Shown: positions 26,126-51,995 of the stretch, one piece after another
Position numbering within the stretch: the first letter of the stretch is position 1
Layout: each line of letters starts with the position of its first letter
Assembly: GCF_003704095.1 (NCBI RefSeq)
Contig: NW_020846280.1
Span: forward strand, 248,001 to 312,000
DNA: 64,000 nucleotides
Direction: 5' to 3'
Source of the DNA: Pocillopora damicornis
Lineage: Eukaryota
Program-made: the position numbers and the translations under genes
The notes under the pieces: model-generated
Told to the model about the DNA's origin: nothing
The model's database searches: none
Seen by the model: only the letters and a program-made list of their open reading frames with translations

Positions 26126-29100
26126 ATGCTTGCTCCGAAAGCGTTGAATTTGGACAACGATTCTGAACGAACAGAGGACGGGTCGATTACAGAAGTTTCG
26201 GAAGATGACATTCCGCTCGCTGTGCGTTTAAATTTGTCAGGAAATAGCGGTACAAATACTACAGGAAAGCAGCGGGTACGGTCTTCTTTTCAAAAGAAGG
26301 GTGGATTTGTCATCCCACGAAAGAAAAAGCAAGCAAATGGTAAGTTAATCATGATCTTTGAGCTAAAGCATTTTTGACTAGTGGTGTGACTTTTAAACGT
26401 GCTAAAATTTCTTGCTCGCCTTTATGCTAATCGTTAGTTTTGCGTAAAAACCCTTCAGAACGAGGTGTATTTGCGGCCCTTAAACACTGATCTGGTTTGA
26501 CTTTGGCATTTCTTTTTTAAAGAACTTCTTCAGCATTCCAGTTTTGATACTAGAGAAGGGAAGGAGGTACTTCGCAATGTCGCGCAATCATATCGAGATC
26601 CTGTGCTTGGCGCTACCCTGAAATTTGAAAAGCTAGAGCTTGTATTTAATGACCAGCTGTCCCGAGAGGTGAGTAAATTTGGATTATTAATCGTTCCATT
26701 CATTCAGTGAGTGACTTTGGATCATTAATCATTCCAAGTCCGAAGTAAGCTATGGATTTATTTAAACAACGTTCCACAGCAATCTTCTGATCTTTGTTTG
26801 GGCTTTGTTTTAATCAACAGTACCAGGATAAAAAACAGTCTATGCGGAACGAATGGCGAAATTCTAAAGAACTTGAAGACAAACATGCGTTCTTCTACAC
26901 TGTTGATCGTGAAGAGGTTTGAATAGCTAAGCTCAATTATACTTTTTATGGCATGCGATGCGGTTTTTGCAAAATTAAGCGAGTGTTTCGTTTTCTTACA
27001 CAAGCTTCGCTACAAGTGAAAGTACAGGATAACTTAAGTGAAATGTTTTTTTTTTGTTCCACAAACGTCTAATGTTTTCACAAGGAGACAAAATTTAACC
27101 AAAACGATTTCATGAATCCCTGACCTCGAAAGAAACTTGCTATGTTTATTTGAACGATTGTTGTTAAAATTATTCAGACTTCCATTTTTAGATGAATTGA
27201 AAATGCTTGAGTTGACAATTTTGTGAAAAATTTCGATTCCTATCGTAGTAATCGCTGTTGATAAACTTTAGTTGTGCCTCTAGTTGAATAGAGAAGCGAA
27301 ATAGATTTTAGATGAGCCAAACTGGTGTCCTTGGTTAGTTTGATACTTAAAGGAGCAAATAATTTTTCATCACATCCCAGCTGCTTCCGATAATTGCCTC
27401 GTTACGTATTACGTGAGAAATCTGGTTTCGTTATTTCTAGGAATGGTTTTGCACAGAAATAAATTTGATGACCTATTTTATAAGTTGACATTTATCAAGC
27501 TCATAGCATTATGATATGGAGGGAAACAAACTCTAAGCCTGTTTTGTCTTATTCTGGGCACCAGCTGTTTGATTTTGTGTTTGGCACGAAGATGCGAAGG
27601 CAAATTTTGAGGCCTAGTGGCAAGAATTCTGTTTAGCCCTCATCTTCATTAGGTTTACAATGCTTTGATAAAAGAAAGCAACGACAGAACCAGTAGCTTA
27701 CCTCTGGGACAAAGGATTTGTTTTAGATTAGCATGGGGGTTATTCCAAAATCTTTCCTTGCCAAATATTTTGGTCGTTTGCATTTACTCTTGAGTCCTAA
27801 AGAGTGACTAGTTTCTCATTTCGTTGTACATAGTCATCCTTGAATTACGCATAAAGGTCACAAGACTAAGGAAATGATCACCAACTAAAGAACTTCTTGA
27901 CTGTTAAAGAAATTCTCCTTGATAGCTACTTAGGAAATGTAAAGCGAACAGTGTGGAGAAAATTAGGATGTAAAGGGTATGGTAATCCTTGACAAACGTC
28001 CAGCATCCAACATTTATGGTTGAAGCTTGAATTGCTGTGAAAAAGTTTATTCTTTCTGCAAAATAAATTATTGTGAAGGGAGGCAGGGAAACACTGTTTC
28101 GTTTCAGTATTTTGTTAACCTATTTTGGTTTTGTTATATCAGGCAAGAAAAATATGTGAAAATGGATTGGAGGTTGGTTCAACATCATTATCATGTTTGG
28201 GAGATCCATCAATGGGTATGTGTTTTTTGTCATAATAATGGTTCACTGTAGAAATTCTTGTGCTCTCATTGGTCAAGAACTATTGTAAATAAGATAATAG
28301 ACAACAAAGATGGTGTGATGTAATGCTCGACAATCCTCGCCATGTCAGATAAAAAATTTATCTTGTGAAAACAATCGCAAATTTCTGAGATATGGACAAT
28401 AACAAACTTCTGAGTTTTAAGTCTGGTAGACTTAGAAATTTTTGTAGAAGAGCTTGTCATGAGGGAAAAAAAGCAGAGGAAGAGAAGTAGAAATAGAAAG
28501 TCCAGTTCTCAGTTTGCAAAGTTGAAAGATGAATAACCTCGAAGAAATACTTGGTAATGGAAAATTGTCAATTTGTTAAATAGACAAGGCACTGACAATG
28601 TTATGGTGAAATTGATATTAATCACTCTTAATGATTCTTAATATTTACAACTGATCATGCAGTTTCTTTGTGTTTACATTTAAAACTTCAGGTGTGTATC
28701 TTGGCCGTCATGCTGACGTCATTTCCAGGAAACCTCTTATTCAAGGTTCTCTGGGATACCTTATAGTTTTCAAAGTCATCAAGGTTTGTGTGCAGTCTAA
28801 ATTGCGTAAAGGAACTCATTGCTGACTAAAAATCATCCTTTAATCCTTAAACTCCCATGAGTGACTCAGACAGAATTTCTCCTTACAATATCAATACAAT
28901 GTCAACCAGATAAGTGATGAGAATAAAGAAAAATATCAATTTGGGGATGATTAGTTGATCCAATACTAAATTCTCTGAACCAACATTATAAGAATTGTAT
29001 GGTTGACAGTAAGGAGAATTACAAACCTGTTCTGGGAGTTAAAGGGTTAAGTGTTCTGCAGTACATTGCAACCTTAAATTCTTAAGGTATCATGTATTTC

Positions 29101-32100
29101 CTTTAACCACAAGATTGGTCAAAAGTACTTCAAAACTTACGGAAAGCACTGCTATATTCTTTGGTTGTGAAACAGTAGGAAGTGTATATTTTGGAGCATT
29201 AATATCTTTTCTTTTTTCCTTTTACCTTACAGGGCAAGGTAAAACAAGTAACAGAACGGAATGCAGCAACTGCTGGAGACCTGCTTGAGCCAACACCAAA
29301 CTTTGACTGCCATGTTTCAAGATCCCTTCAGAATCTTCAAGCAAACAGCCCACTTAACCAAGTATTTGATTACTCACAGGTGGGTTTGAAGGACATCATT
29401 TGTGTGGTGGGATTTGTTTAAGTGTGGTAACTAAACTCATCACATAGCCTGTATAGCCTTGTTTATGCTTTTAATGAAAAATATTGTATAATAACTCCCT
29501 TCCTTGGGCCATGCACAGTGGCTTGAGTAGGGCAGAATAAGCTGTTTGGCATCGAAAAGCCAAAACAAAGAGCAAAAAGATGAAGGAAAAAAGAGGGGGT
29601 GGTAGTCTTATGATAAAATGCTCATTGAATGGTTTAAAGTGGGGCAGATGGCAGCGAGGTCTGTACATCTTGACCAAGAGCCAAATATTTTCCCACATGG
29701 CCCTCCCACTCAGTCGCTAAATACACAATCTCAGTCAACTTTTGGTCCCTGTACTACTTGATTTGTTTGATCGGGTTAAGAAATACAGCAGCTTTAATAA
29801 AAGTAACAACATGACAATTTCAGGCCGTAAGTGGACTGTTTTATCACTTTCAAGGGGTTGCTGCTTCTGGGGATTTATTGCAACTAGGAAATTTTATAAT
29901 ATCTTTTTTACTGCAGACTTCTCCCTTGGAAAATTAAGCATGGATTAAGTTGTGCTGTTAACTGATGTTTTTTATTAATGCCTTGAGAAATTTATATGTC
30001 TATGAAATCTTTTTATTTTTATTTTTTAAACAGTATTATTTCTACGAGTTTGCTGAGGAAGGTGATGACCTGCATGTAAAAAGGCCGCGGCATTGTCTTC
30101 CTTATGCTGTTATCACTCTTTCGGTGGGTGATTCATTGGGTCCTCATCAAGAATCATCCATTGTGCAGGTGAGGTGAAAGCAAAATGTAATGTTTGTCAC
30201 CTTTTTTCTTTATCATACAATTTCTGATTTTATGCATTTTTGTTAGGAGGAGTTTCCAGGTGTGGACAATAGTGGGTTTTCACTGCCAGCCAAAGGTTTT
30301 GTAAGACGCGAGACAAGTAAGTTAAACTTTGAAATTATATTGTATGTCACCTCATTCTTTTTTAAATGTGTAGGCCAGGGTTCTCAAAAGAAGGTGGCAT
30401 CTTTTAGTATTTTAACAGTGTATAATTAATTTTTTTTCTTTTCATTTTGCACCCAAATTTTATTTCTGGCAACCATTTTATGATTTAACTTTTCCAGTTG
30501 GCGACTTTGAAAAAAATGACTATGAATAATTGCGATGGGCAGACATTTAGTTTTTATCCTGTTCAGAACCCTGGTAAACCATTTGACAATTAAAAAGAAG
30601 GATTTGATTTTTAGATGGTAATGCACGAGTGACATGTTACACTAAATGATGTAAATTTATTATGGTTAGGAATTCCAGAAAAGAGATGGGGAAGAAGTAG
30701 CCATGTTGTTTGGACGGGGAAAATCACAAACAAAGACAGATTGTTGGCTGATGCACAGCTTGTTTGCCATTCTGTACAGAAAATCAAGCTTCCCTTTGAA
30801 ATGTAAGTTAATTTAGCAATGATCGAGGGTTGGTGAAGTAAACCATTTTTGGTGAGAGACCTTTTCATTGTTGGTCATGTTGCAGCTGTTGATCTTTGGG
30901 AAAAAACAGTCAAATTTAATATGCACCCAATCAGTAAGATATTTCATAAAGCTTCCCATTTTCCTCTGACACTATACCTACTTTGGCTTGGAAACACATC
31001 TCTTGTTGAAGTAGGTAATCTGCATGTTATTGGCTATGTTTTTTGAGATTGACATTTTTCACTAAGCAAGATTTACTTCATTTAGGTCAGATTATTATTG
31101 ATCTATGAAGGTTTTTTCTTATTGCAAAGCAATCTTTCATCAAGTTGTCAATGTTGTCATCAACACATGTTTACATGATGCAAAATTTTTGCTTTCAGTG
31201 GTAAGAAGATTGTTATGAAGGAGAAAATCTCCTTTCAGCAGCTGAGACCATTCTTGACTTTCCCACTTTTTCGCTCTGGTCCACCCTCTGTGTCTAGAGT
31301 GTGCAAAGGTAATGTTTTTCTATTTTTGAATGAAATTTTTTTTTCTAAATTTTACATGGCCTTTGTCTTAAAAATAGAAAACTCATTTTATCCTTGATTT
31401 TATCCTTGAACTAATAATAACAGGAAAGTTTGTAAAAATTTGACAACTGCATTATGTGATGTATATTCTGTGCCTGGTATAACCAGGGGCTGCCACTTTG
31501 AAAGTGAGCTGGTGGATTGAGTAATGCTCCCATGTAAGTAGCAACCAATGACAAGCTCACTCACAAGAAAACAGACACAAAGCAGGGTAGTGTTCCAGTA
31601 TTTAAGATGTTTCAATTTTTTGGGGTTTTCTTGTTTTTTCTTTATTTTTATTTTCTAGTGAATGTAGGCTCTGACATTTTAATAAATTGATTTCTTCTTA
31701 TAGTTCCAAATATAATTAGTTTTGTTGTTGTTGTGTTTTTAGCATCTTTAGCTGGTGGGACAAGCTTTTTGCATTGTGAATTAGTTCCAATTGAAGATGA
31801 CCATGGAAAAATTATAAAACTTGTTAAGTTTTTCCAGGAGAAAAATTGGGTAAGCAACATGATGAATAACAAAACGCACAGATAGAACCCTAAATACTTG
31901 GAATCTTTGATTGTTGTGAAATTTTTTGCTCATATCAGTTGTTTGGTGGTGGTGAAAACATCAAAGACAAGCAAGTCTCACAAAGTCAACATCTCAATCA
32001 ACACTGCTGCTGTAGGAGTCTGATCGTGGACACTAAACTTAAACCCCCTCAAAAGTAGGGAAGATTTGTTCCTCCACACCAGTAGCAAAACAAAACCCCT

Positions 32101-35100
32101 TTGGAATGAGGATCAATTGTCCTGAGTTATGCTACTTGCTGATCAATATAACAAATTGTAGTTGTGATAGAAATATGAGACAGATATGTTCATTTGTTTT
32201 GTAATTTTCACAATAAGTAAGGTTAAATTTTTAGTAAATTCTGTTAATTTTCATCAACCAACTGTGTAATATTTCTTAATACTTTTTTCTCTTTGTCGAC
32301 ATTGTTTTTTTAAGGCTGGAATTGTCAAAAATCCAGATGCCAATAGAGTGATATTTCTTATTCCAACCTCTCAAATCACTTTGGACCTTGGTGAGTGATC
32401 ATCCTATAGCCTTGTGGGTGTTTTTCCTAAAGTGTTCTTAACTTGTCTGACAGGTTTTTATATGGTGTGTGAAGAGCATCACCTTACAATGTATCTTTTT
32501 TTACTGCTATTTTCTTTGTTTTTACATAAAATGGCTTGATCATGTAATTTTATATGTTAATTACATTGTAACTGTTCAAAGGAATTAGAGAAAGCTGCTT
32601 TATTTTCCCTTTGTGATGAGAGTGTTTTAGACTTGCGACTTGAAGTTTTAGCCTTTTTTGTGCCTATACTGAATGGCTATGGAACCAAAAGTCCTTACAA
32701 AATTGATTATTTCCTAGGCATCACTACAGTAGATTCACCAGCAACACTTCATGCTCTCCTCTTTGTGAAGAAACAGAAAACTGGCAGAGGTAAGTGTGTG
32801 TCTCAATGCCCAGATCATATAACTGTGTAATTATTCACTTGATTTTAAGAAATAAGAAAAAATTTTATTTATGAAGGTAAACAACTACTTCAACCCTCTA
32901 ACTCCCTAGATCTGATTCATTGTTAATTCTTCTCTTTAGCTACAACACTTACTCTCGCAAATTAGTTATCAAAATTTGGTGTTAGATCAGGATCATCACT
33001 TTTACCTGACAAGTTTGGGTATTCTCATTACCTTTGTGTTGGGTAATGTATGCATACTGTAGTGAGAACTTACATGTTTATCACTTCTGGAAGTTAAAAG
33101 ATTCAAGTGGTGTGTGAAAAGGGAGCAGTGGTGACATCCAACACAACATCCATGGAAAATGAACATAGATTTATCGCATTTCCTTATTCAGGGAAAAAAC
33201 ACTGATTTGTGTTTACTTTCGACACGTTACGTGATGTACTAAATTTTTTTCGTCTACGAACTCGTCATTTGATTGCATTTGATTGTCGAAAAAATATGGA
33301 TGTACGACCGTACGACCGTACAAGATGCTACTTTTAGCATGCGTGGTCAACTGTACCGCGGGCACGCCAACGTCACGGCTTTGTTCAGTAGTCCAGTGGT
33401 CGGTGCACTGGGCTCCGAGTCGGACGACCCGGGTTCTCGTCCTGGCCGGGGCAAGGCGTTGTGCCCTTGAGACGTGCGGGGGGGAAAAAAAATGTGAGCT
33501 CCGCTTTTAGGCTTGGCTAAATCTATATATTATTTTATGTAGTAACAGATGGAAGTAAGCACTCAAATACCAGGTCCTTAATCCTAATGGAGGAAACAAA
33601 GGCTTGGAAGCAAGCATTTGTTTCCTTGTAGATAGTACAACGTGACAAAAGTCCTCTGGATGCAGACGTAGTTTTGGGTATTTCTCGGTGTACCTGTTTT
33701 TCCAGTGATGTCCTAATCCTTATTTGGATGTGTTTGTAGACCGCTACTTATCTATGCAATTTGTGTTGCTCCTGATGTCATACTTATGCTATTTTCTTCT
33801 TACGTCTCCTCGTAGAGAACGTCATCAACACGGCGAAAAGTGGCTCTGTAACCGCAAATGATATGGGAGTAAGTCAAATTCAAAAGGAACTGAAAAGACA
33901 TCTGAGTACAAAGGTTGATGACAAGGAGAAGCTCAATGAACCAAGACGGCACAGTTTAGATTCTGCGAGACCATTAGCTGCCCCGGCATCCAGTCACATG
34001 GAAAGGCAGGATGTTCCTGATTTTGTGTCGTGTGATAAGGGTTTGACAAACGAGCAAACGGTGACATGGAAGCGTAGAGTGGAAAGTTGGCTTAGCAGGC
34101 CACACCCTTTGGGAGGCATGGAGGGAGATTTTCAGAAGTCGACAATTCAATCCTCTTCCGCTCCTACTTATGTTCCTGGTCCCAGAGTAGTCCCAAATGT
34201 GCCTTTTCAGGATGTGCGTGCAAGATCAAGTGGTAATAACGAGGAACAGAGACTGTTGTCTGGGAAACAAGATGTGAATTTTAGAACTATTGGAAATATG
34301 GAACAGCACAGAGTGTTTTCTGGACAACAAGATATCCCAATTGGAACACCCAACACAGAGAAACAGAAAGTAGCCCTTGGAAAGCAAGATGAACTTGAAA
34401 GACATGAAGGAAATGTAGAGAAAAATCAAGGTTTTCTCGGAGAGCATGCTGATGTCTCATTGCAACAGTTCAAACTGGATGACGTGGCTAAGAAAGACAC
34501 AGTGTTACCTTCGCCAGCTCTTGTTGTGAGGAAAGAAAAACACAGGGAAGATCCGAGATTGAGGCGCTCTGTTGACGGTGAGCCAGCCACGTCATCTAGC
34601 AGAAGTGGCCATGGTGTGCCTTTTAATGCGCAAGCGTCGCTGCAAGCTCGGGGAGTGAAACCGAATTCTGCTCCAGTTGCATATACATCACCAATAACAG
34701 CTGCTAATCAACAGAACAAGTATCAAATCAATAGTGAATTTCTGAACGAGTTGTTGGTTAAGATAAAATTTCCAATGTCTGAGCAATCGAATACGAATTA
34801 TCAATCGAACAGTGAGGTTTTAAGAAATTTTGTGGAAAAGGTGAAACAACAGAAACCTGAAGAATCAAGCCCAAACAGCGGATTTCTAAGAGAGCTGTTA
34901 AACAGGTTGAAATCACAGAAGCCTGAAGAATCAATGTCCACCATGATTGATGGTATAAGAAAAACCTTGGACATGATGAAGAATCAATTAGAGTCGCAGA
35001 GTGTGAAACGTCAGGCACAAGACGCTGCAAAAGGAGCAAAAACTGCTGGTACGTTGATGTCTTCAACGATTGATGAGAAGTCTATGAAGAGAAGCCGTAG

Positions 35101-38100
35101 TGGTGTGGGTTCAACAGAGGTGAAAGGGGAAAGATCTCAAACATATCAAGGTAATGCATCAGTATTGTCCGCACAATCATCTGGAGAGCGAAACTTGAAA
35201 AGTATTGAGAAGCGAAGAGAAGAAAAACAGACACCTGTTGTAAGGTCTGAAAAGAAAGCTATGGGAGATTCTCCAACGAAGGGGTCAAAACAGCACAAAA
35301 GTACTCCTAAAGGTCCGGCAACACCAGCCAATAGTAAGCCAGTCAAGGAGACTGCTGTACCAGAATTGTCTGAGGCCCCACCTCCGGCAATTCCATCTTG
35401 TGATGCCCTGACAAGACCACTATCAAATTCTGATGCGCCACCCAAAAAACCCAAGTTGACATTGATTCTTAAGAAGAGAGACTCGAGAGAGGTTTCTGCA
35501 CAATCGTCTGGTGATGAACATAATCAAACACCAGAGCCTAAGGTGACAAAACGGTCTCAGGAAACAGAGCACGAGGAAAAAGCTGATATCCAAGGGGACA
35601 GAAAGTCACCTGTATCCATGGATTTGAGTCCCCAATGCACCACACCAACAGGATCAGTTAGTCCTATAACTGTGGTTTCCTCAAAAGGACGTTACCACTC
35701 TGTAGGAACTCCAGCAAGTACTCCTTCAACAGTTCCGATTGCCATAGTGTCATCGAGTTTTCCATTCAATCCTCCCCTTCCTCAAGGGCCCTACAGGAGT
35801 ACATTGAGCATGGGACCATGCACAAGTCAGCCAAATCCACCACCAGTTCATTCTGCGCCATTTTCATCCCCTTTCCTACCTCAGTCCATTATTGGCACAA
35901 GTCCTCAACCAGCACTTCAGACTCCATCAGTCTCATCTGCGCCTCCTGGTGGAACCCTACCCTTTGGTTCTCCCCCTCCACCACCTGGCACAACGTTTGT
36001 GCCATACTCTCCCATCTCACCAACACCTATTTCTTCTTTACCCGCTTCCCTACCACCTCGGCCTGCACCTAGCAGCTCATCGTTTCCACCTCTACCTTCG
36101 CATCCAACCATTCAGCACCATGAACAGCAGTGGACACCTCCTCTTCAACCCAATCAGAGGTTTGCCTTCCCTGCGAATATGCCACCTCCACCAGGCATTG
36201 CACCAATTTCTCCATCTGAGGTGCCACGGTGGCCTGCAAACACTCCTCATCCGAGGCTTGTTCTTCCACCACCATGTCTTCCACCAACAGCTGGTAGACC
36301 TCATCATGTTTTCCCACCAAGTGTGCCATTTCCGAGACCAGTGCCAGAGATGCCTCCTGTGCCACCCCAAAGATTTTCACAAATACCAGTTCAGAGGTTC
36401 AGTGTTCCTCCTCTACCTCCCACTGGGCCAGGACACCCTCATCGCGGTGGTCTTCCTTGCACTATACAAAAGATGCCTGTGCATCCCATGTATAGTGCAG
36501 GGCCTTCAGTGCCTCAGTTTCCACCACGACAACCAGGTCCTATTGGATTCTGGGTTGCTCCGATTAAAACTGGTTCTGCCCCCAGCGGAGGCGCTAAAGG
36601 CTATGCGAACGTAATGTTTCCACAATCTACAGAGCAAAGATATTCAAAGGAGTTGGCAACCACAATTCCTAGAAAGGATGAAGACCCTAAAAAAGACGAG
36701 ACAAGGCAAGGAAACAACAAGCATCTCGGTTTTGCAAAGTGGCAGAAAGGTGCTGAAGAGGGCCAAAATGAAAACGATGCAGATGATGTCAGAACGATGA
36801 ACAAAGCACAGCACTCTAGCACTCAAATAGGAGACCAAACTGATGCTGCAACAAGCAACTCAGAGATGACAGTTTTCGACTCTTCAAAAGAGGACAGAGA
36901 GATAACAGGTAGCGAAAGAGACAAGAAAGAAATGCCTATGAAGGAGAACGTGACTGAAACCAGGCCAACCGAGGAGTCTATGGAAAGAGTGGACCAGAGT
37001 AGAAGAGAGACAGAAAAGGAAGGCACCGAGGCTGTAGAAACACTAGAGAAACCTACAGAATCAGCAATCAAATTGTCATTAATAAATGAAGCAGGAACGC
37101 AAGGCTTATCATCAGGGTTGGACCAAATGGATGTGACAGAGCCAAATGAATCACCCACGAAACTTTCGCAAACTCACGAGTCTATTTGCAATGCAAAAGA
37201 TCAAATTGTGGTTGAACCAGCAAGAGAAGGATGCAGTAATGTTTCAGGAAACCTTGACGATGTAGGTTTGATAGAAGATGACAATGTGGACGACGTACCA
37301 AAGGAAAGAAGCACTGAAGCTAAGGACCCTCCTCTGGCTGATGCCTCTGCGTGTCAAATCTCAATCTCTCAACTTTCAACAGAACCTTCAGGTGTTTTAA
37401 GTAATAGGCACAGCGACATAGCAATCTCAGGAAGTAGTACAGACGTTTTGGGCAGTAAACCATCCAATGGTTTAACCACCACAACATATCACACTGATGC
37501 AGAATACAAGGAATCCAAAACCCATGTAACAGAACCTCCTGGAAGTATTGATGAACACAGTGATGTGTCCATCTCTGGAAACAGTTCTGACCTTTTTGAC
37601 ATCAACCATCCTTTGTGTTTGCCCACCACACCCTATCGAACTGAAGCAGAACGAAAGGGATCTAAAGCGGTCAGTAAGATCTTTGACATTCTTCGAAGGA
37701 ATGCTCAGGAATCCAGATCTGGTGCAGAAAAGGCGATAGAGGAAGAGATGGAAGGAGATNNNNNNNNNNNNNNNNNNNNNNNNNNNNNNNNNNNNNNNNN
37801 NNNNNNNNNNNNNNNNNNNNNNNNNNNNNNNNNNNNNNNNNNNNNNNNNNNNNNNNNNNNNNNNNNNNNNNNNNNNNNNNNNNNNNNNNNNNNNNNNNNN
37901 NNNNNNNNNNNNNNNNNNNNNNNNNNNNNNNNNNNNNNNNNNNNNNNNNNNNNNNNNNNNNNNNNNNNNNNNNNNNNNNNNNNNNNNNNNNNNNNNNNNN
38001 NNNNNNNNNNNNNNNNNNNNNNNNNNNNNNNNNNNNNNNNNNNNNNNNNNNNNNNNNNNNNNNNNNNNNNNNNNNNNNNNGAAGGAGATGTGGAGGAGGA

Positions 38101-41100: not shown

Positions 41101-44100
41101 GGCCTGTTACAAGTAAGTTCTAATCCGTATCTTGCCTTGTCAACAAAGAAACGACCACTAACTGACATGGAGTATAGTGACCTTGAAGACATAAGTCCAG
41201 GTGAGCTCAGTTCTGATTTTGAGAGCTGGCCAACCACTCCAGACACACCTGAAACGGCCACCCCAGCCATGGACTTTACTCACCCGAGTCTGGGATTCTG
41301 GGCTGCACCACTGAAATCAAATGACGTTTCCAAACCAGCTGGAGCTGTCGTTAGCGATGAACATCAGCAGGTGTCCGATTTACAGATGTTGTCGCCAACT
41401 TTATCTCCACCGGCATACCTTGAAGAGCACCCTCTTGTAGGGGTGGAACAAAGCCAAGTACCGTATGCTTTTGGAGAGGAAAAGATTCAGGATGTCGTTC
41501 AAGAACCTTGTATATCACGATCATCTTGGCCAGGTTAGTGTCATAGTTATATTAATGTTCAGACTTATAATTAGTTTTACAAGAGTGAAAACTCATGGTT
41601 AATAGTATTAGAGGGAAGGTACCGTAAATTGAAGGTAGCTACAGAGGAGGGTAGGAATCACCTTAGCAACCTAGAGGTCATCGAGCGATAGCGCTTCTTT
41701 CTGTCATCTCAACACCGACGAACCGGTTTATGGAATAACTGCTCACCTCGAAATGTGGTAGGGAGGGAGAGGGAGAGAAAGAGAGAGAGAGAGAGAGGTA
41801 AACAAAGGAAGCAAAGAACCCAAGGAAATTGAATAACCGCATCTGGAAGCCCCCTCGTCACAGAAGGAAAAGCGTCGCATTGACTTACATGACATGTACA
41901 TGAAGCCTCATAGAATAATATTATAGCGTGCCACTTCTGGAGAAAGAGCTCATAAGTCGTGATATTGGAAGATCCACGACTTGAGACAGAGGAAGCAAAA
42001 TTAAGCTTCGTTGCGTTTGCTTTTTAGTTGAGGGTTTCTTCTGCCAAACGACGACCTCTGAGGAACGTGACTTGGGATTGGGAAGTCTGGGTCCGACAGA
42101 GCTGGTGGTGCCCAGAGTTCACAAAGAATCTTTATCGTTGGATGACAGCACTGGTCATTATATCTCACAGTCTGCACACGAAAGTGATGAGGACATTGCA
42201 AGGTTTGTTGACCAATGGTTTTATTTTGTTAGATGAACCATTCTCTTTTTACTTAGGGAATAGGACTGATAATGACTGGGCGTCGTTTGGATTTTTCAAA
42301 GGGAAACGGAAGGGGTTCACATTCACAAATTTCCGTGCACCATTTACCAGTTATAGGTTAAGATGTGTGAATGGATTCCACGTTCAGAATTTACCTGACG
42401 ATTAACTCGAAGTTCCTGGAACGCCTACGACATCTTTTACAGAGTAGCTCTCAATGTATAACTTAAGAAACAAAATAGTGTCCATGCTGGCCTGTCAGCC
42501 TTCTACTTTCAGAAATGTTGTTCTCCTTGTTTTATTTCAAGATATGGTCAAGAGCTTCCTCAGTCTGAAGTGTTTGAATATGGCCATGGACTCCCTGATC
42601 ATCAACACCAACATTACAAGTCACACAGGGATAGCGCCCAAAAACCACCCAGAGGAACACAGAAGGTAGTTGAATCAAGTTACTCGGCCACATTTGCTTT
42701 ATAGTCTCGAAAAGATGCAGTTTTGCAACAAAACGATAAGTAATCAGCATTACTGGATACAATTAAGTTTGGCCTGTTTTTTCTCGATAAAAATAACCTT
42801 TCAGAATTATTTTTTACTGTCCATACGGTGTAATTTTTTTTTTACCTGAATGATTATTTTCTGATAGGAAGGAAAGCATCGCACAACAATTCGCGAGAAA
42901 AGATATCCGTGGAAGAGCCGTGAAGAGGTCAAACACAGCCAGGGAACGTCACACAGCCAGGGAACTTCAGTTGGGGGAGAAGGCAGGTGTTGTATTCACT
43001 TGGTTAGGGATACATCTGAATCAGCTACTTTCAGCAATGCTCGTTCACAATCTTAACCAAACACTCAACCTTTACACTCCCAAGATCAAAAGATCGGTTC
43101 TCTTTACAGTTTCCCTTATTTCCCTTCAGTTTTCGCTCGGAGAATTTGGCGTTAAATCAAACAGCATACCTAAGCTAATAAGTTCCCTTTTTGCAATCAC
43201 CTCTCTACTGGACAATATGTTGTTATTGTAGGGAGACGTTCCTTATTAGTTGCTCTTGGGAGTGAAAGGGTTAACTTTTGTGTCACCTCTGTGTCACGAG
43301 TCATCGGGGGTTGATGATCTGTCGAAGGACTTAGTACGTAGGCACAGACGGAGAGAGCATGGGCTCGAGGATCTACTGTTTACCCTTCTTCTCCTGTGAT
43401 TGGTGGTTCAGTTCATCCATACTGGCTGGCTAGCTAGGTTCCTGAGTTTTGACAATTGCGTGCTCGGCCTTGGAAAGGAATCAGCGCGCCACTGAAAGGA
43501 CAAATATTCTCCTGAGAGAGATTTTCAAAGAGATTGTGAACAGTTGAGAGTAGCTGTCGATGATGTGTTTTTATCCTTGAATTTATCTTTTTTTCCGAAC
43601 AATAATGATATTAATTAGGATTGGTTTCACTTCTGCATCTGACTGGTTGAAAAGCTAGGGTGTGGTCTCGTTACTGATAACAAAGCGCATTGAAGCAGAA
43701 CCAAAGCAGTTCTAGATTACTTTCCATAGTCAATCGAAAAGTGCCATAGCACCGTGGACAAATTTTAATAAACTCCAGCAAGAGGTGTTATTCCCATGAT
43801 TTTCGTTTGAGGGCATAGAAGTGAAATCAGAAAGGCATGGTTTCCTTATCATCTGAGGGAAATTAGTGAATGAAATTACAAAATATACATATATATATAT
43901 ATATATCTATATTTTTGAATTGTTTGGATTCTTTCTGGTGGTTTAGATTCCAAGTTAGTAAGTCAAAGCGCCACTGGAAAAAATACTGGTTGTGATGAAG
44001 ACAGCCCTGACAAGAGACCTAAGGTGGTTCAAGATGCAGAAACTGCTAATCACGGTAAATCTGGCGGGATTGAAAAGCCAGAAAAATGGGACATATATGT

Positions 44101-45582
44101 TTTTGCGTGGATGAATAAAGTGCAGCTTGAAAACTGGGTACGAAGGCAGAACCACGGGGCTAAACTGGCCACCATTGGAACGGACCAAACTTGCACTGTT
44201 GAAATTACCCCAGAATCTAAACGCAGATCTTCAGAACGTTTATATCGTCGAGCCAAGAAGCGATTGAGGCGATTATGTCAAAGCTCAAGGCCGTGTACAG
44301 AGGACGCAGATACTCCAGAACCAGCATTTGATGACGTTAACGCGGAGACGCAGTGTGAAAGTTTTACTTCTTTTCATAAAGAAGCAAGTTCCAGTTCTGT
44401 TTCTGTTTCAAAGGAAGATGGGAATGTTGAGAGATGTTCTGTACAAAGCGCGCATGTTAATCACTCGGTATCATCTTGCACTCCGGTTGAAAATTTTGCA
44501 CAAAAGCACATTGATGTTAATGTTGAATGCGATTATTCTGTTCATCCCAAGACGGATGATCTGTTGTGTGATAAAGAAGTTTCAATTATTTTCGAAAAAG
44601 GTTTGGTTACAGAGGTGGAAGGAGTTACCGGAAACAACGATGATCCAAATTATCCAGAAACCAGCTGTTCACATGTTCACCTGGGTAAAGATTCGTCTGA
44701 AGAAGAGGAAGAACACGACGATGTATCGTTGGGGGATCAGGGAAACGAGTGTGGGAGAGATGGCGTACAAAGAGGGCCACTAGCTGGCGCAGAGAGTGAT
44801 AGCATTCATAAAGAGGATGCAGTAATTAAGAGTTTTCCAACCAAAGTGTTCGATTCTAATGAGGATAAAGAGCATCAACCGCTCGACATAGATATGCATG
44901 ATATTGCAGATGATGTAGTGTTACACCATGCTGTTTCTGAGGGGAATCGTGAAGCAAAAGACAGACAGGCAAACCTGTGTGTAACTGCTGATATAAAGAA
45001 TGTGAACGAGTTAAAGTCGATCGGAGATTTTTCTTTGGATTTGAATTCACAACATGAAAAAGACACAAGCGATACGCCGCAGAACGTCAAGGAGGTTACT
45101 GAAGATGTCGAGGTGAATCAAAGTACAACCGACGAAGCTGTGGTTGTGAGGAGTGGATCTGTAATCTTCGAAGACCAAAAACCAAGTTTAGCAGGACAGA
45201 GTATCCCAGATGTTGAAAATAACTCTCGTGAGGAAGGTAGTCTTGGTCATGAAACTCCAAAGTGTCCTGATGAAGGCGAAACAGGAGAAGAAAAGATGCT
45301 CGCAGAGCCTGACTTAGGTCCTGATGGATGTGGAGGAAGAGGAGAAGGAGAAGGAGAAGGAGAAAAACGGGCAGGTATTAAGATTTCCGATCCTAAAACT
45401 AGGAAGGAGAATCACATGAATGAAGCTCCTTTTGAAACCTTGGCAGCAGAAGAGAAGACAGATGGCTCAGGTCACGAGAGGACAGCCTCCACTGTTGCCA
45501 ATGCATTGCCAATTGAGGCTTCAATCGGTATAAGTTCAGATCATTTCAACAAAGCCCACAAAACCCCTTCAACGACTGCTGG

Positions 45583-45620
<38 letters not shown>

Positions 45621-48600
45621 GTGCTGGTGTGTTGACGTCTTGTGATCCTGGTGTGCTAAAACTAGTTCCAGGTACAGTGCCCTCAGCTCTGGAACCTCTT
45701 CCCCAAACCCACATTCCACACTTTCTTCTCCCTCCTCTTCCTCTTCGTCCTTCGCTCCCGAGGAATGTTGCATGTAGCTCTGTTAATAGTTGTCCTCCTG
45801 GTTCAGAACTTCTGTCTCCGACAGAGGCAAGTGGTAATTCAACAATATTTCCATCGGATTCAGTGGCGCAAGAAGTCGCCAATAAAGATGAAGATGATGA
45901 AGATAGGCGACCACCCAAGAGTATAATGGATCATTCGGTGGTTTCGGCTTTGGTGCAGTTTTACACCGAAAGCAATAACGTAAACGGCAACAGAAACTGT
46001 GATCTCAAAGAGAAGGAAGATAATGGTAAAACTAACTCTGGTGTCTGCATTTCGACTCGTATGGAATCAGTGCAAAAGAGCGACAGAAAACATGAAGAAA
46101 CAAGTGATATGGAAATAGACTCTGATAACGAAAGATCCGAAAGCTCTGACGGATATTCAATTCAAATCGATAACACAAACGGAAGCAGAAACAGTGATTT
46201 GAAAGAGAAGAAAGATGATGCTGAAACAAACTCTTGTGTCTACATTTCGACTCGTATGGAATCAGTGCAAAAGAGCGACAGAAAACATGAAGAAACAAGT
46301 GATATGGAAATAGACTCTGACCAGGAAAGAAATGCCACCATTATGGTTATTGAGAGATCTGAAAGCTCTAACGGATATTCAATTCAAGATAAGCCGGCCA
46401 AGTTGGATTCTGCTGACACTGTAAACCAACAAAGCTTAGCAGCTGGTGTTCAATTGCATGCTGAAGACGATAAGGTATCGGTGGGGAAATCTTTAGATGT
46501 ATCAGCAGCGAAGAATCCTGATGTTGATGCAAACCTACTTAAGGATCAGGAACTCTTGAACAATGACGCCCTCAAGGAGATTCCAGGTTGTTCTGGTAAC
46601 GAACGACAAGAAACGCTTTCATGCGTCTCTCGAAATGATCTAGGAGTAGGAAAAAATGATATGGAAGTGGATGTGGAGTCATTGCTGAAGTGTTCATCAG
46701 TCACTTCCAACAAATCAAGTGGAGATAGTCCTGACGTTATCGCCAATAACACTATGGTGATGGGAGATAATTTGGTGGAAAATCCTAAAGGTACATCTGG
46801 GAGATCGCAAGCAGAAAATCTTGATTTTGCGAAGAATGAAGTGCGTGTACAGGAAGGCATAATTGGTATTAAAGGAAAAACGAGGAAGAATGTTACAGAT
46901 GAAAATTATCAGGAGAATCCCATTGTCTCTGGTTACAAACCACGAGCAGAAGAACCAGCAAACTTGGAGGAAGACTTATCTGAAGAGCAACTATTGAGCC
47001 CCATTGATCCGCTCTTCATGGCGAGTGCTGAGCAGACCATTTTCAGCTCAATAGGTGGCTTAAGAAACCTGTTAGGACAATCGTCAACGTTTGATCGCAT
47101 CGCAGAGGAAACCATTGCCTCAACTGTGTCTTCGTTGGAGGATATTCTTCGTCAAGCAAATTGCAGCTACTTGGAGCTGAGCAGCTGCCCCTCTGACAGC
47201 GGTGTGTCTGTGGGGGAGGAAGCTTCGGGTCCTTCTAGAGTATTCAACTTTAACAATATTACGCATTTAGCGACCCCTCCACAGGAAAAGGATTGCAGAA
47301 CGGGGTCGTTGGATGGGCAGTCTCCAAGTGGAGTAGGGCAGCCAGAGTGGCTGTCTACAAATGAAAAGAGTGATGCACGTTGTTACCTCGGTAGAGGTAT
47401 GTTTGTTTGTTCAAACTGACTAGTGAAATGCATGTGCNNNNNNNNNNNNNNNNNNNNNNNNNNNNNNNNNNNNNNNNNNNNNNNNNNNNNNNNNNNNNNN
47501 NNNNNNNNNNNNNNNNNNNNNNNNNNNNNNNNNNNNNNNNNNNNNNNNNNNNNNNNNNNNNNNNNNNNNNNNNNNNNNNNNNNNNNNNNNNTTTTTAGAC
47601 ATATCAAATCTATGGGTGCAGAAATGGCGCAATTTTGAGAGCGGTGCCCTCCCAACACTGAGAACCAGAATCGACTCCTCAACGCCAGTCAACTTTCCGT
47701 TCCTCTGTGAAAATCATGTTATAGTGTGTTGTTGTACTTTCTTTTAGTATCAGGGAAGCCTTCTATTCAGAAGAGAAGTCAAAAGCCAGGTGTTAACAGG
47801 AAGTTCCAGTTCTTTGTGTATTCACCAGACGTTGACAGGGAGTGTGAAGCGTTGAAGGTATGTTGTATGTTGTATGTTGTGCCATTTCCTTAGAAAGGAG
47901 TCGCAGTTAAAGAAAGATCTTTCGGGGTGTCACGTTTGTGAAACAAAGATTAGTCCCCAACAATGAAGCGAACGGCAGACCTTCGCTTTTAGCGGTTTGA
48001 AGCTTTAACGCTCTAGAAATCAATGTCCCTTTACTGAGACAGTTTGTGCAGGTTTTAACCAACGCACATATCAAACCGCGGTATCCTCGTTACTTTGCAT
48101 GATATCGCCATTCACTTTATGATAACAATAGTACACTGTTGCTCAATTGTTTAAGGTTGCAATACTGTATGTTTGTTCTTTTGTAAGAACTACATGTTGA
48201 GAGCAGGTGGAACACTTGTGGATGTCAGGAACTCCAAATATTTGGAGGAAAATACACGAGAGCTGAAAGTGTTCATCAGAAAAAAACACTTGCCATCTGT
48301 TCACAGGTAAATAAAGGAACTGAAGATAAGTATGGTTTTGTCTCACCTAGTCTACTATTTTTCTTCTGCTTTTTGGGGGCACGGTGGCTCCTCTCCAAGA
48401 TAGAGGGTGCGACTCACTTAGCCGGAGTGCTGAAAGAGACGCTGCTTCTCTCTTTTATTTTGTCTCCTTTGGGGAAGAAATAGTTGGTGTTTGGCACGGC
48501 TAAATCTGTTTTCGGAGCGTGTTATTCCCAGAATTTTTTACCGAGTGAATGTCTCTGTGACAAGTGGTTAATGGGCTATGTTGTCATCCTCTTCCTGTGT

Positions 48601-51600
48601 TCTGTACTCACTGTAAAATTGCCGATATTCCTTAAGATTTCTCAATATTTACCTCTTTGTCACCAGGTTGGCCAACTTGTACCGATTGAAGATGTCACCA
48701 CTTGTCAAGTTCTCCCTGTTTAACACTTTGACAGGTATGCGAAACATTCATAATAACAACTGCGAATTGATCTTCACCGTTAGACTGCTATTAACTTCAC
48801 TGCAAAAAAGGGACGTCACAAAAATTTAGTTGATTAGTATAGTTGAGTGGAGTTGACGTCGTCTTTCTTTGTAGACGTGACAGAAGGAAGCCGTTTTTAC
48901 GAGAACATCTTTGTTTCGGGTGGTGCCTTGCTGGCCGATGACAACTTTCTGAAGACAATTCAACTTGGTGAGTCTATGGACAGTCTGCATCTGCATGCGA
49001 GAGGGGGGAAAGGAAGGTTGAGGGGGGTGAAAGAGTGAAAGGTGAGACGGTTTTGGGGGGGAGTGAGAGGGGGAAGAGGAGGGAGGGGTGAGCGGAGTGA
49101 AAGAGTGAAAGGTAAGATGGGGGGGTAGGGGATTGGGTGGGAGCGACAGGGTGAGGGGTTACATATAGATGCGGCACCTCTGAGGGATACTTATGTCCTC
49201 TGGCCCAGTCTTAAATGTTCACTTGTACCACAGTACAGTCCTGGTTTGAATTTCTTCAGCCCTGTGTTGATCGTGTTTCAGCAGCCGGAAGTTTCTCTCG
49301 CTCGCTGCCTGACTATTAAGCCGTATCGTTCTTGCTTTACTTTCGTCTCGTAGATCACCTTGATGCTCTGTTACGCTACCTAAAGGAACAAAGCCTAGTT
49401 CATCAGAAGTTCGTCTGGGTCTTGAACATCAGCCGAAATGGCTACAAGAAACTTTCTCTGAACAGGTGAGTCAGTTTTGGCTTCGTCAATTTTTTATCGT
49501 TATTCAGAAAACCTGTCATCGCGTTGGCTCCGCTCAATCCCTGCGTTTTTTTGTTTTTTGTTTTGGTTTAATTTGCTACAGGCCACTGACGAGAAGAGAC
49601 TCCAGAGTTCTGGTAAGTTCGCTCTTGGTTCAATTTAGTTCGCGTAGTCGGCGCTTTTGCATGCATTTTGAAGTGTTATGCTCCGCTTATCTTATAAGCC
49701 AATAAGCTCTCGCCAAACGGACAGATTAACCTCTGTTCTGGTTTTTTGTTTTGTTCGTTAGTTTTTTTTTTTATGTGTTGCTTGGCGTGCAGCTTCATTA
49801 TCAAAATAGCAAAAGGGTGCTAATGAGTTAATCGGTAACGTTCATCGTAGCTCGCCAAAAAACTTTACTCTCTCAATTTTGTAAAGACATGCGCGAGAGA
49901 TAATGCGGCGAGTGAGAGGTAATTCGCGTATAATTTCAAGGGCGTGGGATTTATCTTGATGTGTGCACTTGAATACACATCGATTCGAGACCTTACTTGG
50001 AATAGTTACATGACTGAAGAAGATATGTATAATTTGAAGATTTTATATTCTCCCCAACCCCCTGTCCCTTCCACTGTTAATTGAATTCAACGTGTTTCCC
50101 CTAGAATCTTCTACGCGATTACAAGAACGAAGGTTTTGTTACAGTTCTTCAAAAGGTGAGAGGATTTGCGGTTATCGTCGAAAGCTGCATATTCATTGGC
50201 AACATTCCCAGAAATTATGGAAAATTGTTGGAAACATTTGACGAGTTTCCCTTGAAACGTCCGATACCGATAGTATTTGAACAAGGATATTAGTAAACGG
50301 AAAGATCTTGTGAAATGCGACTTTGGCAAGTTTACCTTGAGAATTGTCGAAAAGAAATTTCGTTTTTTTGTTTTTGTTTTACGTAGCAGTCAACATGATT
50401 CGCCAAATAAAGCTCGCTTTTGTTCCTAACTACTACAGTGGGAATTTTGTTAAATTTGAATGCTGAACGTATCAATTTTTCGAACCAATTTGATTTCAAA
50501 ATGCTTTTGTTTTGTTCTTCTCGACCAGGGTTACGTAACAGAAGGCATTCCGTCTTCCCAGCGCTATTTACAGACCTCGCTCAAGCTACAAATTGAACTT
50601 GTGTCTGTCTACAGACACGTGATTCTGTTGTCAGGTGCGTCAGCAGAAATCTTTTGCCTATGATATTTTAAAGAAGGGTGTTATTCGTTTTTACGAGCGT
50701 GGTTCAAATAAAAAGTCATTGTCCTCCTTATCGAAATCGAAACCGAAATACCATCAGAAAATCCACACCATCCAGATTTTGCGCTCTGATGTTTAACCAC
50801 TGAGCAACAGCTATGGTAAGCCAGGCCAGTAGTACCGGTTTTGTACCTCTATCACGAATTTGAAAGATTCGAACCACCCAGACTCAAGCCGAACTGCAGC
50901 ACAGAACAATGAGAAGTGATTTGTATTTTCGTTGGATTTAAAGTTCGTGTTTATTTTTCCTCTAAGTATGCTCCAATGTTACGAGTACAAAAGAGGGAAT
51001 GTCCCTTCCTCAGCATGTAAAATAATGGCTTATCCTTGCATGTTTCGTTAAAATCAGTGTTTCTCTTGATCACAGATATGGACAAGAACAGAATGGAAGT
51101 ACCGTGGTTCTTTGAGCGAGGGGTGAGCTTATCAGCCAGTGCAGATTAAATTTTTCCTATTCTAAGGGGCCATGAGAATCTATTTTAGCTGTGCTCTTCC
51201 TTATTCGAAAGATATAATTTTTTCGTTTATTTCCTCTTTTAGATTGGGGTTATGAATGTTAAAGAGTTTTTGACGTCATTTGCGGGGTAAGGAGTTTGAA
51301 CAGACGCATACATACGCTCGCACGTGTGCATGCAATTACGCACGCATGTGCGTATGCTTCTACACGTGCACGTTTTCACATACGCATATACGCTCGTATA
51401 CTCATACGTTTATGCATGTAAAAGTAAATAACAGGATCTCGAAATTACTCCAAATATTTGGAAGCCGCTTTTTTAATACCAATCTTTTATTTTCTTTATT
51501 ATAGGGAAAGGGAAGCAACAAACCTGATCCTAAAACAGCCGAATCCTGAAAGTATGTGTAAGGAAACTACGGCAGTGGCATATTGTTCCACTCCCGAAGG

Positions 51601-51995
51601 TGCGTTAGCTTGTTGCAATACGCGCGTGCCAGCTGTTTGTCTCATTCTTTGCTTGTTGCAGTCACAACTACGATTTCGTTATTATCCAATGGGAATTGCA
51701 CACGTGTTTTCTGCTTCATTTCCTCTTTATAGATGAAACGTCTCTCCAAACTCCGCTGGGAACTCCAATGTCAGACTCCTCAACTGATTTTCCATATATG
51801 GAGACACAGGCTCGTGAACCACCGCGCTCGACTGGCACCCCCCGAAAGCGAGCCGTACGCTCGCGGAGCTGGGATGCAGGTTCCATGACCCACACTCGGC
51901 TCCAGATTCTCTCATGCGTGAGAACTGTGCGTGACAGTATTCGTAGTCAGATTAGTAATAGTACTCCTTCAAGTCCTGTAGGTCGGTCCATGTGA
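26126..51995 (+). CDS. TASOR: TASOR/FAM208-family protein (HUSH complex scaffold homologue): pseudo-PARP (DUF3715), SPOC, very large low-complexity region, DomII/PIN; about 35 exons, about 4,100 aa
   Basis: Exons: 26126-26339, 26523-26668, 26821-26916, 28143-28215, 28692-28783, 29233-29379, 30034-30168, 30247-30316, 30670-30802, 31199-31308, 31743-31849, 32315-32390, 32718-32789, 33816-38345, 38487-38789, ~39249-39440 (uncertain), 39527-40006, 40709-40788, 41149-41533, 42028-42202, 42542-42665, 42868-42982, 43947-47396, 47748-47857, 48188-48306, 48667-48734, 48875-48967, 49354-49465, 49582-49612, 50105-50155, 50529-50634, 51076-51122, 51243-51286, 51505-51599, 51733-51995. The motifs FVIPRK, ICENGLEVG..LGDPSMGVYLGRHAD, FKVIKGK, LEPTPNFDCHVS, QYYFYE..RPRHCLPYAV, VWTGKI, LHALLF, FVSGG and RHVILLS match human TASOR (recalled). 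The middle exons are less certain than the termini. Confidence 0.88.
26523..30168 (+). other. Exons encoding the TASOR pseudo-PARP (DUF3715) domain
   Basis: Spliced translation ...SYRDP...LVFNDQLSRE|YQDKKQSMRNEWRNSKELEDKHAFFYTVDREE|ARKICENGLEVGSTSLSCLGDPSM|GVYLGRHAD...FKVIK|GKVK...EPTPNFDCHVS...SQ|YYFYEF...RPRHCLPYAVI. Confidence 0.88.
28840..29050. mobile_element. TTAA-flanked MITE in a TASOR intron
   Basis: TTAATCCTTAAACTCCCA...TGGGAGTTAAAGGGTTAA, near-perfect TIRs. Confidence 0.78.
30670..32789 (+). other. Exons encoding the TASOR SPOC domain
   Basis: VVWTGKITNKDRLLADAQL...IKLPFE...FLHCELVP...LVKFFQEKNWAGIVK...IFLIP...LHALLFV follows the SPOC pattern (W-x-G start; AG-x-V, FLIP, LH-x-L). 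Confidence 0.8.
32889..33105. mobile_element. MITE copy
   Basis: AACCCTCTAACTCCC...ACATGTTTATCACTTCTGGAAGTTAAA; same subfamily as 1531-1742. Confidence 0.65.
33380..33530 (+). mobile_element. tRNA-derived SINE-like element
   Basis: Pol III A-box-like TAGTCCAGTGGT and B-box-like GGTTCTCGTCC at tRNA spacing. It is a GC/CpG-rich island in an AT-rich intron and lacks a canonical acceptor stem. Confidence 0.55.
37760..38080. other. Assembly gap (321 N) inside a Glu-rich tandem repeat of TASOR exon 14
   Basis: Flanked on both sides by GAAGGAGAT and E/G/V-rich codons; the gap length keeps the frame. Other gaps lie at 1838-1937 and 47438-47591. Confidence 0.95.
43066..43274. mobile_element. MITE copy
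   Basis: AACCTTTACACTCCCAAG...CTTGGGAGTGAAAGGGTTAA TIRs. Confidence 0.7.
45575..45630 (+). repeat. (GCT)n trinucleotide run encoding a poly-Ala/Gly tract
   Basis: GCTGGTGCTGCTGCT...GGTGCTGGTGCTGGT encodes TAGAAAAAAAAAAGAGAG. Confidence 0.9.
45970..46390 (+). repeat. Coding tandem duplication with a 195-bp (65-aa) period in a TASOR giant exon
   Basis: ISTRMESVQKSDRKHEETSDMEIDSD occurs twice, 195 nt apart (TCGACTCGT at 46052 and 46247). Confidence 0.93.
47748..51286 (+). other. Exons encoding the TASOR C-terminal DomII and PIN-like domains
   Basis: KFQFFVY..CEALK|NYMLRAGG..LKVFIR..HRLANLYRLKMSPLVKF..YENIFVSGGALLADD..LLRYLKE..WVL..LLRDYKNEGFV..LKLQ..RHVILLSD..GIGVMNVKEFL is colinear with the human TASOR C-terminus (recalled). 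Confidence 0.8.

Follow-up and report, generated by a model that had tools for sequence, protein, structure and literature searches.

The window analysed here, a 64,000-nucleotide stretch of the coral Pocillopora damicornis (contig bases 248001-312000 of a 234-Mb genome; coordinates are positions in the window unless another contig is named), carries on its plus strand a TASOR-like gene, which we assign to the family of the HUSH scaffold TASOR. On this strand, numerous short and conserved open frames lie between 26 and 52 kb, along with two of great length (33776-38419 and 43919-47416). The gene is modelled as a single unit with its ATG at 26126 and its stop codon at 51993-51995, made up of about 32 exons and some 4,000 codons (Table 1). 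The encoded protein comprises, in order, an N-terminal tail, a pseudo-PARP domain (DUF3715), a SPOC domain, the products of two giant exons (~4.5 and ~3.5 kb) that are probably disordered, the TASOR alpha/beta domain (DomII) and a PIN domain. The conserved domains are carried by small exons of 31-147 bases, with DomII and PIN spread over ten of them. An earlier reading made from the sequence alone (hereafter the sequence-only reading) had described a spliced gene of an apparent cnidarian, with pseudo-PARP and SPOC at the N-terminus and DomII/PIN at the C-terminus in the order of human TASOR, and with its conserved domains in small exons. This description was borne out by Pfam and by a colinear ortholog for the domain order, by the exon sizes given above, and by the nearest named relatives, which are proteins of Porites, Desmophyllum and Nematostella, for the host.

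The ortholog, which was found among cluster members, is the Porites lutea RefSeq protein XP_073254468.1, a 4,056-residue "uncharacterized protein". It is aligned colinearly by tblastn from its Met1 at 26126 to its last residue at 51992, with identities of 57-82% over the domain exons and ~30% over the giant exons (~35% for giant exon 1); the ends of this chain coincide exactly with the span of 26126-51995 proposed earlier. In the Pfam, PDB and tree tests this protein stands in for the unjoined window exons. It carries DUF3715 together with both C-terminal TASOR families, each scoring above its Pfam cut-off (Table 1), and the solved structure closest to it is that of the human TASOR pseudo-PARP domain (PDB 6TL1), with an E-value of 1.5e-42. 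Phmmer aligned its residues 39-490 with residues 63-492 of frog TASOR and its residues 3688-4003 with residues 1200-1502 (E 1.9e-19); TASOR2 also aligned at both ends (E 2.8e-11 at the C-terminus), and TEX15 over the PARP part only. Profile-profile alignment of invertebrate against vertebrate N-termini gave a probability of 100% and an E-value of 3e-72, extending from the FVIPRKKK motif through the PARP and SPOC domains. A search with the partial ortholog of Porites evermanni (residues 80-505) returned Nematostella, octocoral, amphioxus and sponge proteins, then vertebrate TASOR and TASOR2, and lastly TEX15. The best named vertebrate matches are TASOR, then TASOR2, then TEX15, and the best solved structure is TASOR, in agreement with the identity that had been proposed. 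A further ortholog, Nematostella vectensis LOC5509427 (2,507 residues, also an "uncharacterized protein"), carries all three families PF12509, PF23314 and PF24630 in precomputed Pfam. In Desmophyllum pertusum (MU827306.1) the public annotation has five or more separate models at the orthologous locus, one of which has 1,934 residues and contains DUF3715.

A maximum-likelihood tree (IQ-TREE) of 33 DUF3715 proteins over 231 columns separated a TASOR-side clade, including the cnidarians, from TEX15 with support values of 99/97, and placed the cnidarians outside the vertebrate TASOR (99/97) and TASOR2 (100/100) clades. This position, on the TASOR side yet outside both vertebrate clades, fits a single pre-duplication ortholog, and the coral gene appears to correspond, as a single copy, to both vertebrate paralogs, TASOR and TASOR2. 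TEX15, a piRNA-pathway factor that shares the DUF3715 pseudo-PARP, was rejected as an identity on the PARP-only alignment, the separate clade and the lack of its family PF15326 on the Porites ortholog (E up to 1), which instead has SPOC and PIN. Membership of the TASOR family is close to certain; the fuller statement, that the locus is one expressed gene of ~32 exons and ~4,000 residues and the counterpart, from before the duplication, of the vertebrate pair TASOR and TASOR2, is one that we hold with good but lesser confidence.

The N-terminal tail ends in FVIPRKKK, which precedes the pseudo-PARP domain and aligns with the FQIPRK of vertebrate TASOR. The exon 1 donor (ATG|GTAAGT) leaves no gap against the Porites lutea ortholog, and the other N-terminal exons, delimited by canonical GT-AG sites, likewise keep phase and align without any gap. 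Four consecutive plus-strand exons match successive segments of DUF3715 (PF12509), covering profile positions 23-150 and together scoring ~91 bits, where the Pfam cut-off is 28.5 bits. Both the His and the Glu of the PARP catalytic site are replaced: the window exons read F-Y-Q (in AFFYTV, GVYLG and DYSQ|YYFYEF), and in the alignment with 6TL1 the Porites protein reads L-Y-Q, as does human TASOR. Judged by these residues, the domain is an inactive PARP-like domain. The SPOC domain of the Porites ortholog gave a weak Pfam match of 15.5 bits over residues 338-464, which lies under the cut-off; the region is nevertheless covered in a profile-profile alignment of Porites residues 62-487 with gecko TASOR residues 110-507, with a probability of 100%.

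At the C-terminal end, DomII and PIN share the exon 48875-48967, which encodes the end of the former and the start of the latter. All ten exons of this module are 51-82% identical to the Porites lutea ortholog. Within PIN lies a coding micro-exon of 31 bases (49582-49612), flanked by strong splice sites and consistent with the lengths of RNA contig pieces. Exon 50529-50634, read in the open frame 50520-50648, matched Pfam PIN_TASOR positions 75-116 (17.5 bits, E 0.0038), the sole family reported for this frame, and with DUF3715 at the start of the gene, a match to PIN_TASOR is very unlikely to have arisen by chance. A genome-wide six-frame Pfam search gave no PIN_TASOR match, and for TASOR_alpha-beta only a chance-level match interrupted by stops on another contig, because the exons are too short; Pfam also found no match in ten stop-free plus-strand frames between 38.4 and 52 kb, among which one PIN exon was taken in the wrong frame. 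The 3' untranslated region extends past 52300.

The 3' third of the gene is expressed and spliced. In polyA RNA-seq runs of several studies, 62-79% of the words sampled from giant exon 2 are present, and Logan contigs from four runs, each of a different study, were placed on 46800-52300, one 5.5-kb stretch. These contigs show GT..AG junctions at 47396|47748, 47857|48188, 48306|48667, 48734|48875, 48967|49354, 49612|50105, 50155|50529, 50634|51076, 51122|51243, 51286|51505 and 51599|51733; junction 49465|49582 was lost where a repeat was skipped, and the piece lengths of the run X13 contig fit the 31-base exon. One 3,006-base contig of run X13 passes from giant exon 2 through all C-terminal exons into the 3' untranslated region. 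When the exons were concatenated to count stops, the frame from 47396 to the stop codon proved open over 380 codons with zero internal stops. Whether N- and C-terminal exon groups belong to one transcript was central to the sequence-only reading. Giant exon 2 is connected with all C-terminal exons by an RNA contig; for the connection of giant exon 1 with the N-terminal exons, the support comes from splice sites, from phases and from the gene models of three other corals. In run X1 the ends of the intron crossed at 48729-48874 are non-canonical (GA..TA), with four additional letters, where the other runs show the canonical 48734|48875; a variant close to the end of the exon, either allelic or from the assembly, probably accounts for the deviation.

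The two giant exons are rich in Ser, Pro and Glu and contain only ~21% hydrophobic residues, and are therefore probably disordered. Searches with them returned only exon-sized open reading frames (ORFs) from unannotated coral assemblies. Giant exon 1 contains short conserved motifs and is conserved in at least 20 coral sequences; in Desmophyllum pertusum it has many more copies of a ~20-residue SGxTEQxRVFxGQQD repeat. The middle exons form blocks that are conserved with two other corals and with residues 1853-2440 of XP_073254468.1. Giant exon 2 includes an internal duplication of 195 bases, whose 25-residue cores (46052-46126 and 46247-46321) are identical, as well as a 17-copy CTG run at 45576-45626 that encodes poly-Ala.

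Two assembly gaps fall within the gene. The left flank of gap 1, which lies in giant exon 1, ends in the conserved motif TEAERKGSKAVSKIFDILRRNAQ, and PDNPDPSAM is found on the right flank; at locus L006 of another coral, these two motifs stand ~20 residues apart within one uninterrupted ORF. Between the two motifs (region 37700-38230), an acidic tandem repeat of the EEEVEG type, with a period of 21-54, starts at 38081 on the right flank, and its expansion in this coral explains the assembly break. As written, the two flanks are in frame (321 N, equal to 107 codons), but the gap length is an estimate and is no proof by itself; a continuous reading frame across the gap is likely. Gap 2 is fully intronic and leaves the coding sequence untouched: RNA contigs of three runs from three studies join its two flanking exons directly, and the contig of run X5 runs to 47396 and then shows the initial letters of the following exon.

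Table 1. Features of the coral TASOR-like gene, Pfam matches on its Porites lutea ortholog and the MPP8-like candidate. Positions refer to the window unless stated otherwise.
Feature	Position	Strand	Evidence or remark
TASOR-like gene, whole coding span	26126..51995	+	colinear Porites lutea ortholog; splice sites and phases; RNA junctions in the 3' part
Exon 1, N-terminal tail ending in FVIPRKKK	26126-26339	+	57% identity to XP_073254468.1 residues 1-75; donor ATG|GTAAGT
Pseudo-PARP, six exons	26523-26668, 26821-26916, 28143-28215, 28692-28783, 29233-29379, 30034-30168	+	Pfam DUF3715; GT-AG junctions
DUF3715 match	28134-28223	+	profile 23-52, 20.5 bits
DUF3715 match	28685-28798	+	profile 48-86, 24.8 bits
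DUF3715 match	29224-29382	+	profile 79-129, 26.6 bits
DUF3715 match	30031-30102	+	profile 128-150, 19.1 bits
Small conserved linker exon, ends ambiguous	near 30273-30341	+	conservation
SPOC, five exons	30670-30802, 31199-31308, 31743-31849, 32315-32390, 32718-32789	+	67-79% identity to XP_073254468.1 residues 328-499
Giant exon 1, ~1,500 codons	33816..38345	+	open frame; acceptor 33816 and donor AGG|GTGAGT 38345 from consensus
Assembly gap 1, inside giant exon 1	37760..38080	.	single open frame on each flank
Six or so middle exons, approximate ends	~38487-38789, 39527-40006, ~41066-41533, 42028-42202, 42542-42665, ~42868-43053	+	consensus splice sites, several ambiguous
Giant exon 2, ~1,150 codons, acidic or Ser-rich	43947..47396	+	open frame, coral conservation; donor 47396 fixed by RNA contigs, acceptor approximate
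Intron containing assembly gap 2 (47438-47591)	47397..47747	+	RNA contigs of X1, X6 and X13 join 47396 to 47748; GT..AG ends
TASOR alpha/beta (DomII), four exons	47748-47857, 48188-48306, 48667-48734, 48875-48967	+	RNA junctions; 51-76% identity to XP_073254468.1 residues 3671-3798
PIN, remaining six exons	49354-49465, 49582-49612, 50105-50155, 50529-50634, 51076-51122, 51243-51286	+	RNA junctions except 49465|49582
Last two coding exons, including stop	51505-51599, 51733-51995	+	RNA junctions; 60% identity to XP_073254468.1 C-terminus
DUF3715 on XP_073254468.1	residues 132-281		136 bits
TASOR_alpha-beta (PF23314) on XP_073254468.1	residues 3686-3780		59.5 bits
PIN_TASOR (PF24630) on XP_073254468.1	residues 3784-3929		96.3 bits
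MPP8-like candidate gene	contig C77, 72391-59455	minus	chromodomain, ankyrin repeats, PINIT-like domain

Compared to human TASOR (FAM208A), the coral protein has the same succession of a pseudo-PARP without the catalytic His and Glu, SPOC, a long disordered linker, DomII and PIN, as well as the FxIPRK motif; however, it is ~2.4 times longer owing to the two giant exons, its disordered sequence is unrelated, DomI and the Periphilin-binding segment are unrecognisable in it, and it falls outside the vertebrate TASOR clade. With vertebrate TASOR2 (FAM208B, the HUSH2 scaffold) it shares the family, the terminal domains and a very long middle, but the coral gene is not nested within TASOR2. The Porites lutea and Nematostella models are direct orthologs with the three Pfam families in common, Porites being colinear with every exon block, whereas the Nematostella protein is much shorter. 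The TASOR-like proteins of Schopp et al. 2023 (PMC10578480) similarly combine DUF3715 followed by SPOC in non-vertebrate animals and branch apart from TEX15. That class is defined by DUF3715-SPOC-DomI, whereas the cnidarian protein has DomII and PIN, with DomI undetected by sequence. A more distant parallel is Chp1 of the Schizosaccharomyces pombe RITS complex, which also has SPOC and a C-terminal DomII/PIN (Douse et al. 2020, PMC7532188); Chp1 has its own chromodomain and no pseudo-PARP, whereas the coral TASOR lacks a chromodomain, which a separate MPP8-like gene would supply.

This candidate was obtained from 57 chromodomain matches in the genome; the downstream 10 kb of 20 of them were checked for ankyrin motifs, and one locus qualified, on contig C77. 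Its chromodomain is split over two exons (72391-72296 and 69469-69254), for which CDYL, CDYL2 and MPP8 are the closest solved structures, each at an E-value near 1e-9, and is followed by a disordered exon of 601 codons in the middle of the gene. Three ankyrin exons lie at 61371-60241, the first of which gives human MPP8 (8QFB) as its best single stretch, at 70 bits; with the first repeat alone, human MPP8 (8QFB) is again the top solved match (E 1.1e-5). The exon at 59694-59455 has residues 240-293 of the MPP8 chain 8QFB, the PINIT-like domain, as its top solved match (E 0.0016), so that the ankyrin and PINIT-like matches run colinear with this chain, and Pfam found both Chromo and Ank on the gene. 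A chromodomain, ankyrin repeats plus a PINIT-like domain together constitute the architecture of MPP8 (PMC7618375). An exon at 60057-59791, putatively also part of PINIT, and an acidic exon ahead of the ankyrin repeats gave no solved match; the matches of the last ankyrin exon were swamped by designed ankyrin proteins, and for the first ankyrin exon the ESM Atlas returned nothing but generic ankyrin clusters.

The sequence-only reading had named HUSH partners to be sought in the same genome, and MPP8 has its candidate in the C77 gene. For the others the outcome is divided: a MORC-family gene is present on the plus strand of contig C3580 (118046-120732), with three successive exons above the Pfam Morc6_S5 cut-off and its paralog assignment ambiguous, while Periphilin and the DUF5604 domain of SETDB1 were not found. 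A Periphilin candidate on contig C2329 was rejected as a generic coiled coil without any Periphilin match in the PDB. The ATF7IP-type domain fn3_4 (PF16794) occurs in 8 places of the genome (contigs C2509, C60, C647 and C1441). Several of these copies stand in long open frames of 460-1,272 codons and three on C60 contain stop codons; they resemble an expanded or mobile family.

How the coral protein might act can be outlined from knowledge of human HUSH. It would be a nuclear scaffold whose SPOC region docks an MPP8-like reader of H3K9me3 and whose pseudo-PARP is needed for targeting, and the assembly would recruit H3K9 methylation and MORC-type compaction to transcribed retroelements. For a HUSH-like silencing role of this kind, exercised with an MPP8-like partner, we see the case as evenly balanced. 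We propose more tentatively, and with somewhat less confidence, that cnidarians have a working HUSH-like complex in which TASOR would be joined by an MPP8 ortholog and by a Periphilin that has diverged beyond recognition. If true, the retroelement surveillance by this complex would predate the split of cnidarians and bilaterians and would have been lost later in flies and nematodes, rather than being a vertebrate invention.

Several observations weigh against reading the locus as one expressed gene with such a role, some concerning the gene model and others the complex. The RNA contigs cover 46800-52300 only, so that the junctions linking the N-terminal exons and the two giant exons to one another are read from the genomic letters, and a portion of giant exon 1 is concealed by gap 1. 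The 26-46 kb thus left uncovered by RNA could be taken to mean that the locus is divided among at least two genes, one with PARP and SPOC for the N-terminal part and another with DomII/PIN for the C-terminal part, as could the annotation of at least five models at the Desmophyllum pertusum locus and the octocoral and amphioxus proteins that show DUF3715 only in the precomputed Pfam list. However, the Porites lutea model and the Nematostella protein each hold both ends in one product, the window exons keep phase and canonical sites and are gap-free against the Porites model at the N-terminus, one RNA contig links giant exon 2 with the PIN exons and the stop codon, and no conserved stop or start lies between the blocks; a division into separate genes is thus very improbable. 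The chance that the locus is a decaying or misassembled copy is smaller still. Two assembly gaps in the span, one of which breaks a coding exon, would suit such a copy, but all conserved exons are open, the gene is spliced and present in the polyA RNA of several studies, gap 2 is intronic, and assemblies often break at tandem repeats such as the one in which gap 1 lies.

The remaining difficulties concern the partners. DomI, the four-helix MPP8-binding segment (human residues 521-632), gave no phmmer or hhalign alignment beyond SPOC, the profiles being shallow; it has been reported to fold only on MPP8 (PMC7618375). A genome search for Periphilin (PF11488, Lge1 family) gave sub-threshold matches only, the best at 21.5 bits, although Periphilin is short and of low complexity, so that a failed search does not establish its absence; a search for SETDB1 DUF5604 gave zero matches, which is not conclusive of absence either. 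The C77 exons, moreover, were joined into one putative MPP8-like gene by position and strand only. The earlier proposal of a HUSH-like defence in an early-branching animal therefore gains an MPP8-like gene in the same genome, while DomI and Periphilin were not detected. A true TASOR-family protein could also work outside any HUSH-like complex, for example as an ancestral SPOC/PIN scaffold in chromatin or RNA processing, with the partnership with MPP8 and Periphilin arising later. The lack of a DomI alignment and of any Periphilin match above threshold would agree with this, as would a protein middle more than twice the length of human TASOR and unrelated in sequence, and reviews place HUSH in vertebrates (PMC7532188, PMC7619638). 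On the other hand, chromodomain, ankyrin repeats and PINIT-like domain, a combination specific to MPP8, occur together in a candidate gene of the same genome, and binding of TASOR is the sole known role of the PINIT-like domain (PMC7618375); SPOC, the second MPP8 contact, is well conserved, and DomI and Periphilin are short or of low complexity and easily missed. We consider a scaffold outside HUSH unlikely, though far less so than a split or decaying locus.

The DomII/PIN module is conserved yet dispensable in human reporter assays, and its role becomes a testable question with the coral gene. In the literature, HUSH has been described as a vertebrate-specific regulator by Douse et al. 2020, from whom the TASOR domain map is taken (PMC7532188), and as having arisen first in cartilaginous fish by Lehner 2025 (PMC7619638), and a 2022 paper states that MPP8 and MORC2 have no fly and worm orthologs (PMC9635835). 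Schopp et al. 2023 reported TASOR-like proteins (DUF3715-SPOC-DomI) throughout Metazoa and named the full DomII/PIN architecture for vertebrates (PMC10578480); the novelty that the sequence-only reading gave to an invertebrate TASOR was overstated, since these metazoan proteins were already described there. Our literature search found no paper on HUSH, the TASOR C-terminal domains or MPP8 in cnidarians, no report of MPP8 outside vertebrates, and no published description of the Porites lutea or Nematostella orthologs. What appears to go beyond the literature is the cnidarian DomII/PIN module together with a candidate MPP8-like gene in the same genome; for Nematostella, the full set of families already stands in precomputed Pfam. 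A pre-bilaterian TASOR-MPP8 core is plausible, and with a cnidarian DomII/PIN and an MPP8-like gene the origin of this core would likely shift back by several hundred million years. Nematostella bears the ortholog and is genetically tractable, so that the discrimination of intronless from intron-bearing genes as an ancient animal defence becomes testable. Should the function not be conserved, the gene would still show the ancestral form of TASOR.

Two further loci were noted. A second, more divergent DUF3715 gene lies in the same genome on the plus strand of contig C580 (62540-64979), with ~30-39% identity to the TASOR and TEX15 domains alike. Next to the TASOR-like gene in the window, a dystroglycan gene (Pfam DAG1, alpha-dystroglycan N2) occupies 54319-62551 on the minus strand, so that the two genes are arranged tail to tail, and in a different coral sample, two contigs likewise have dystroglycan following the ortholog.

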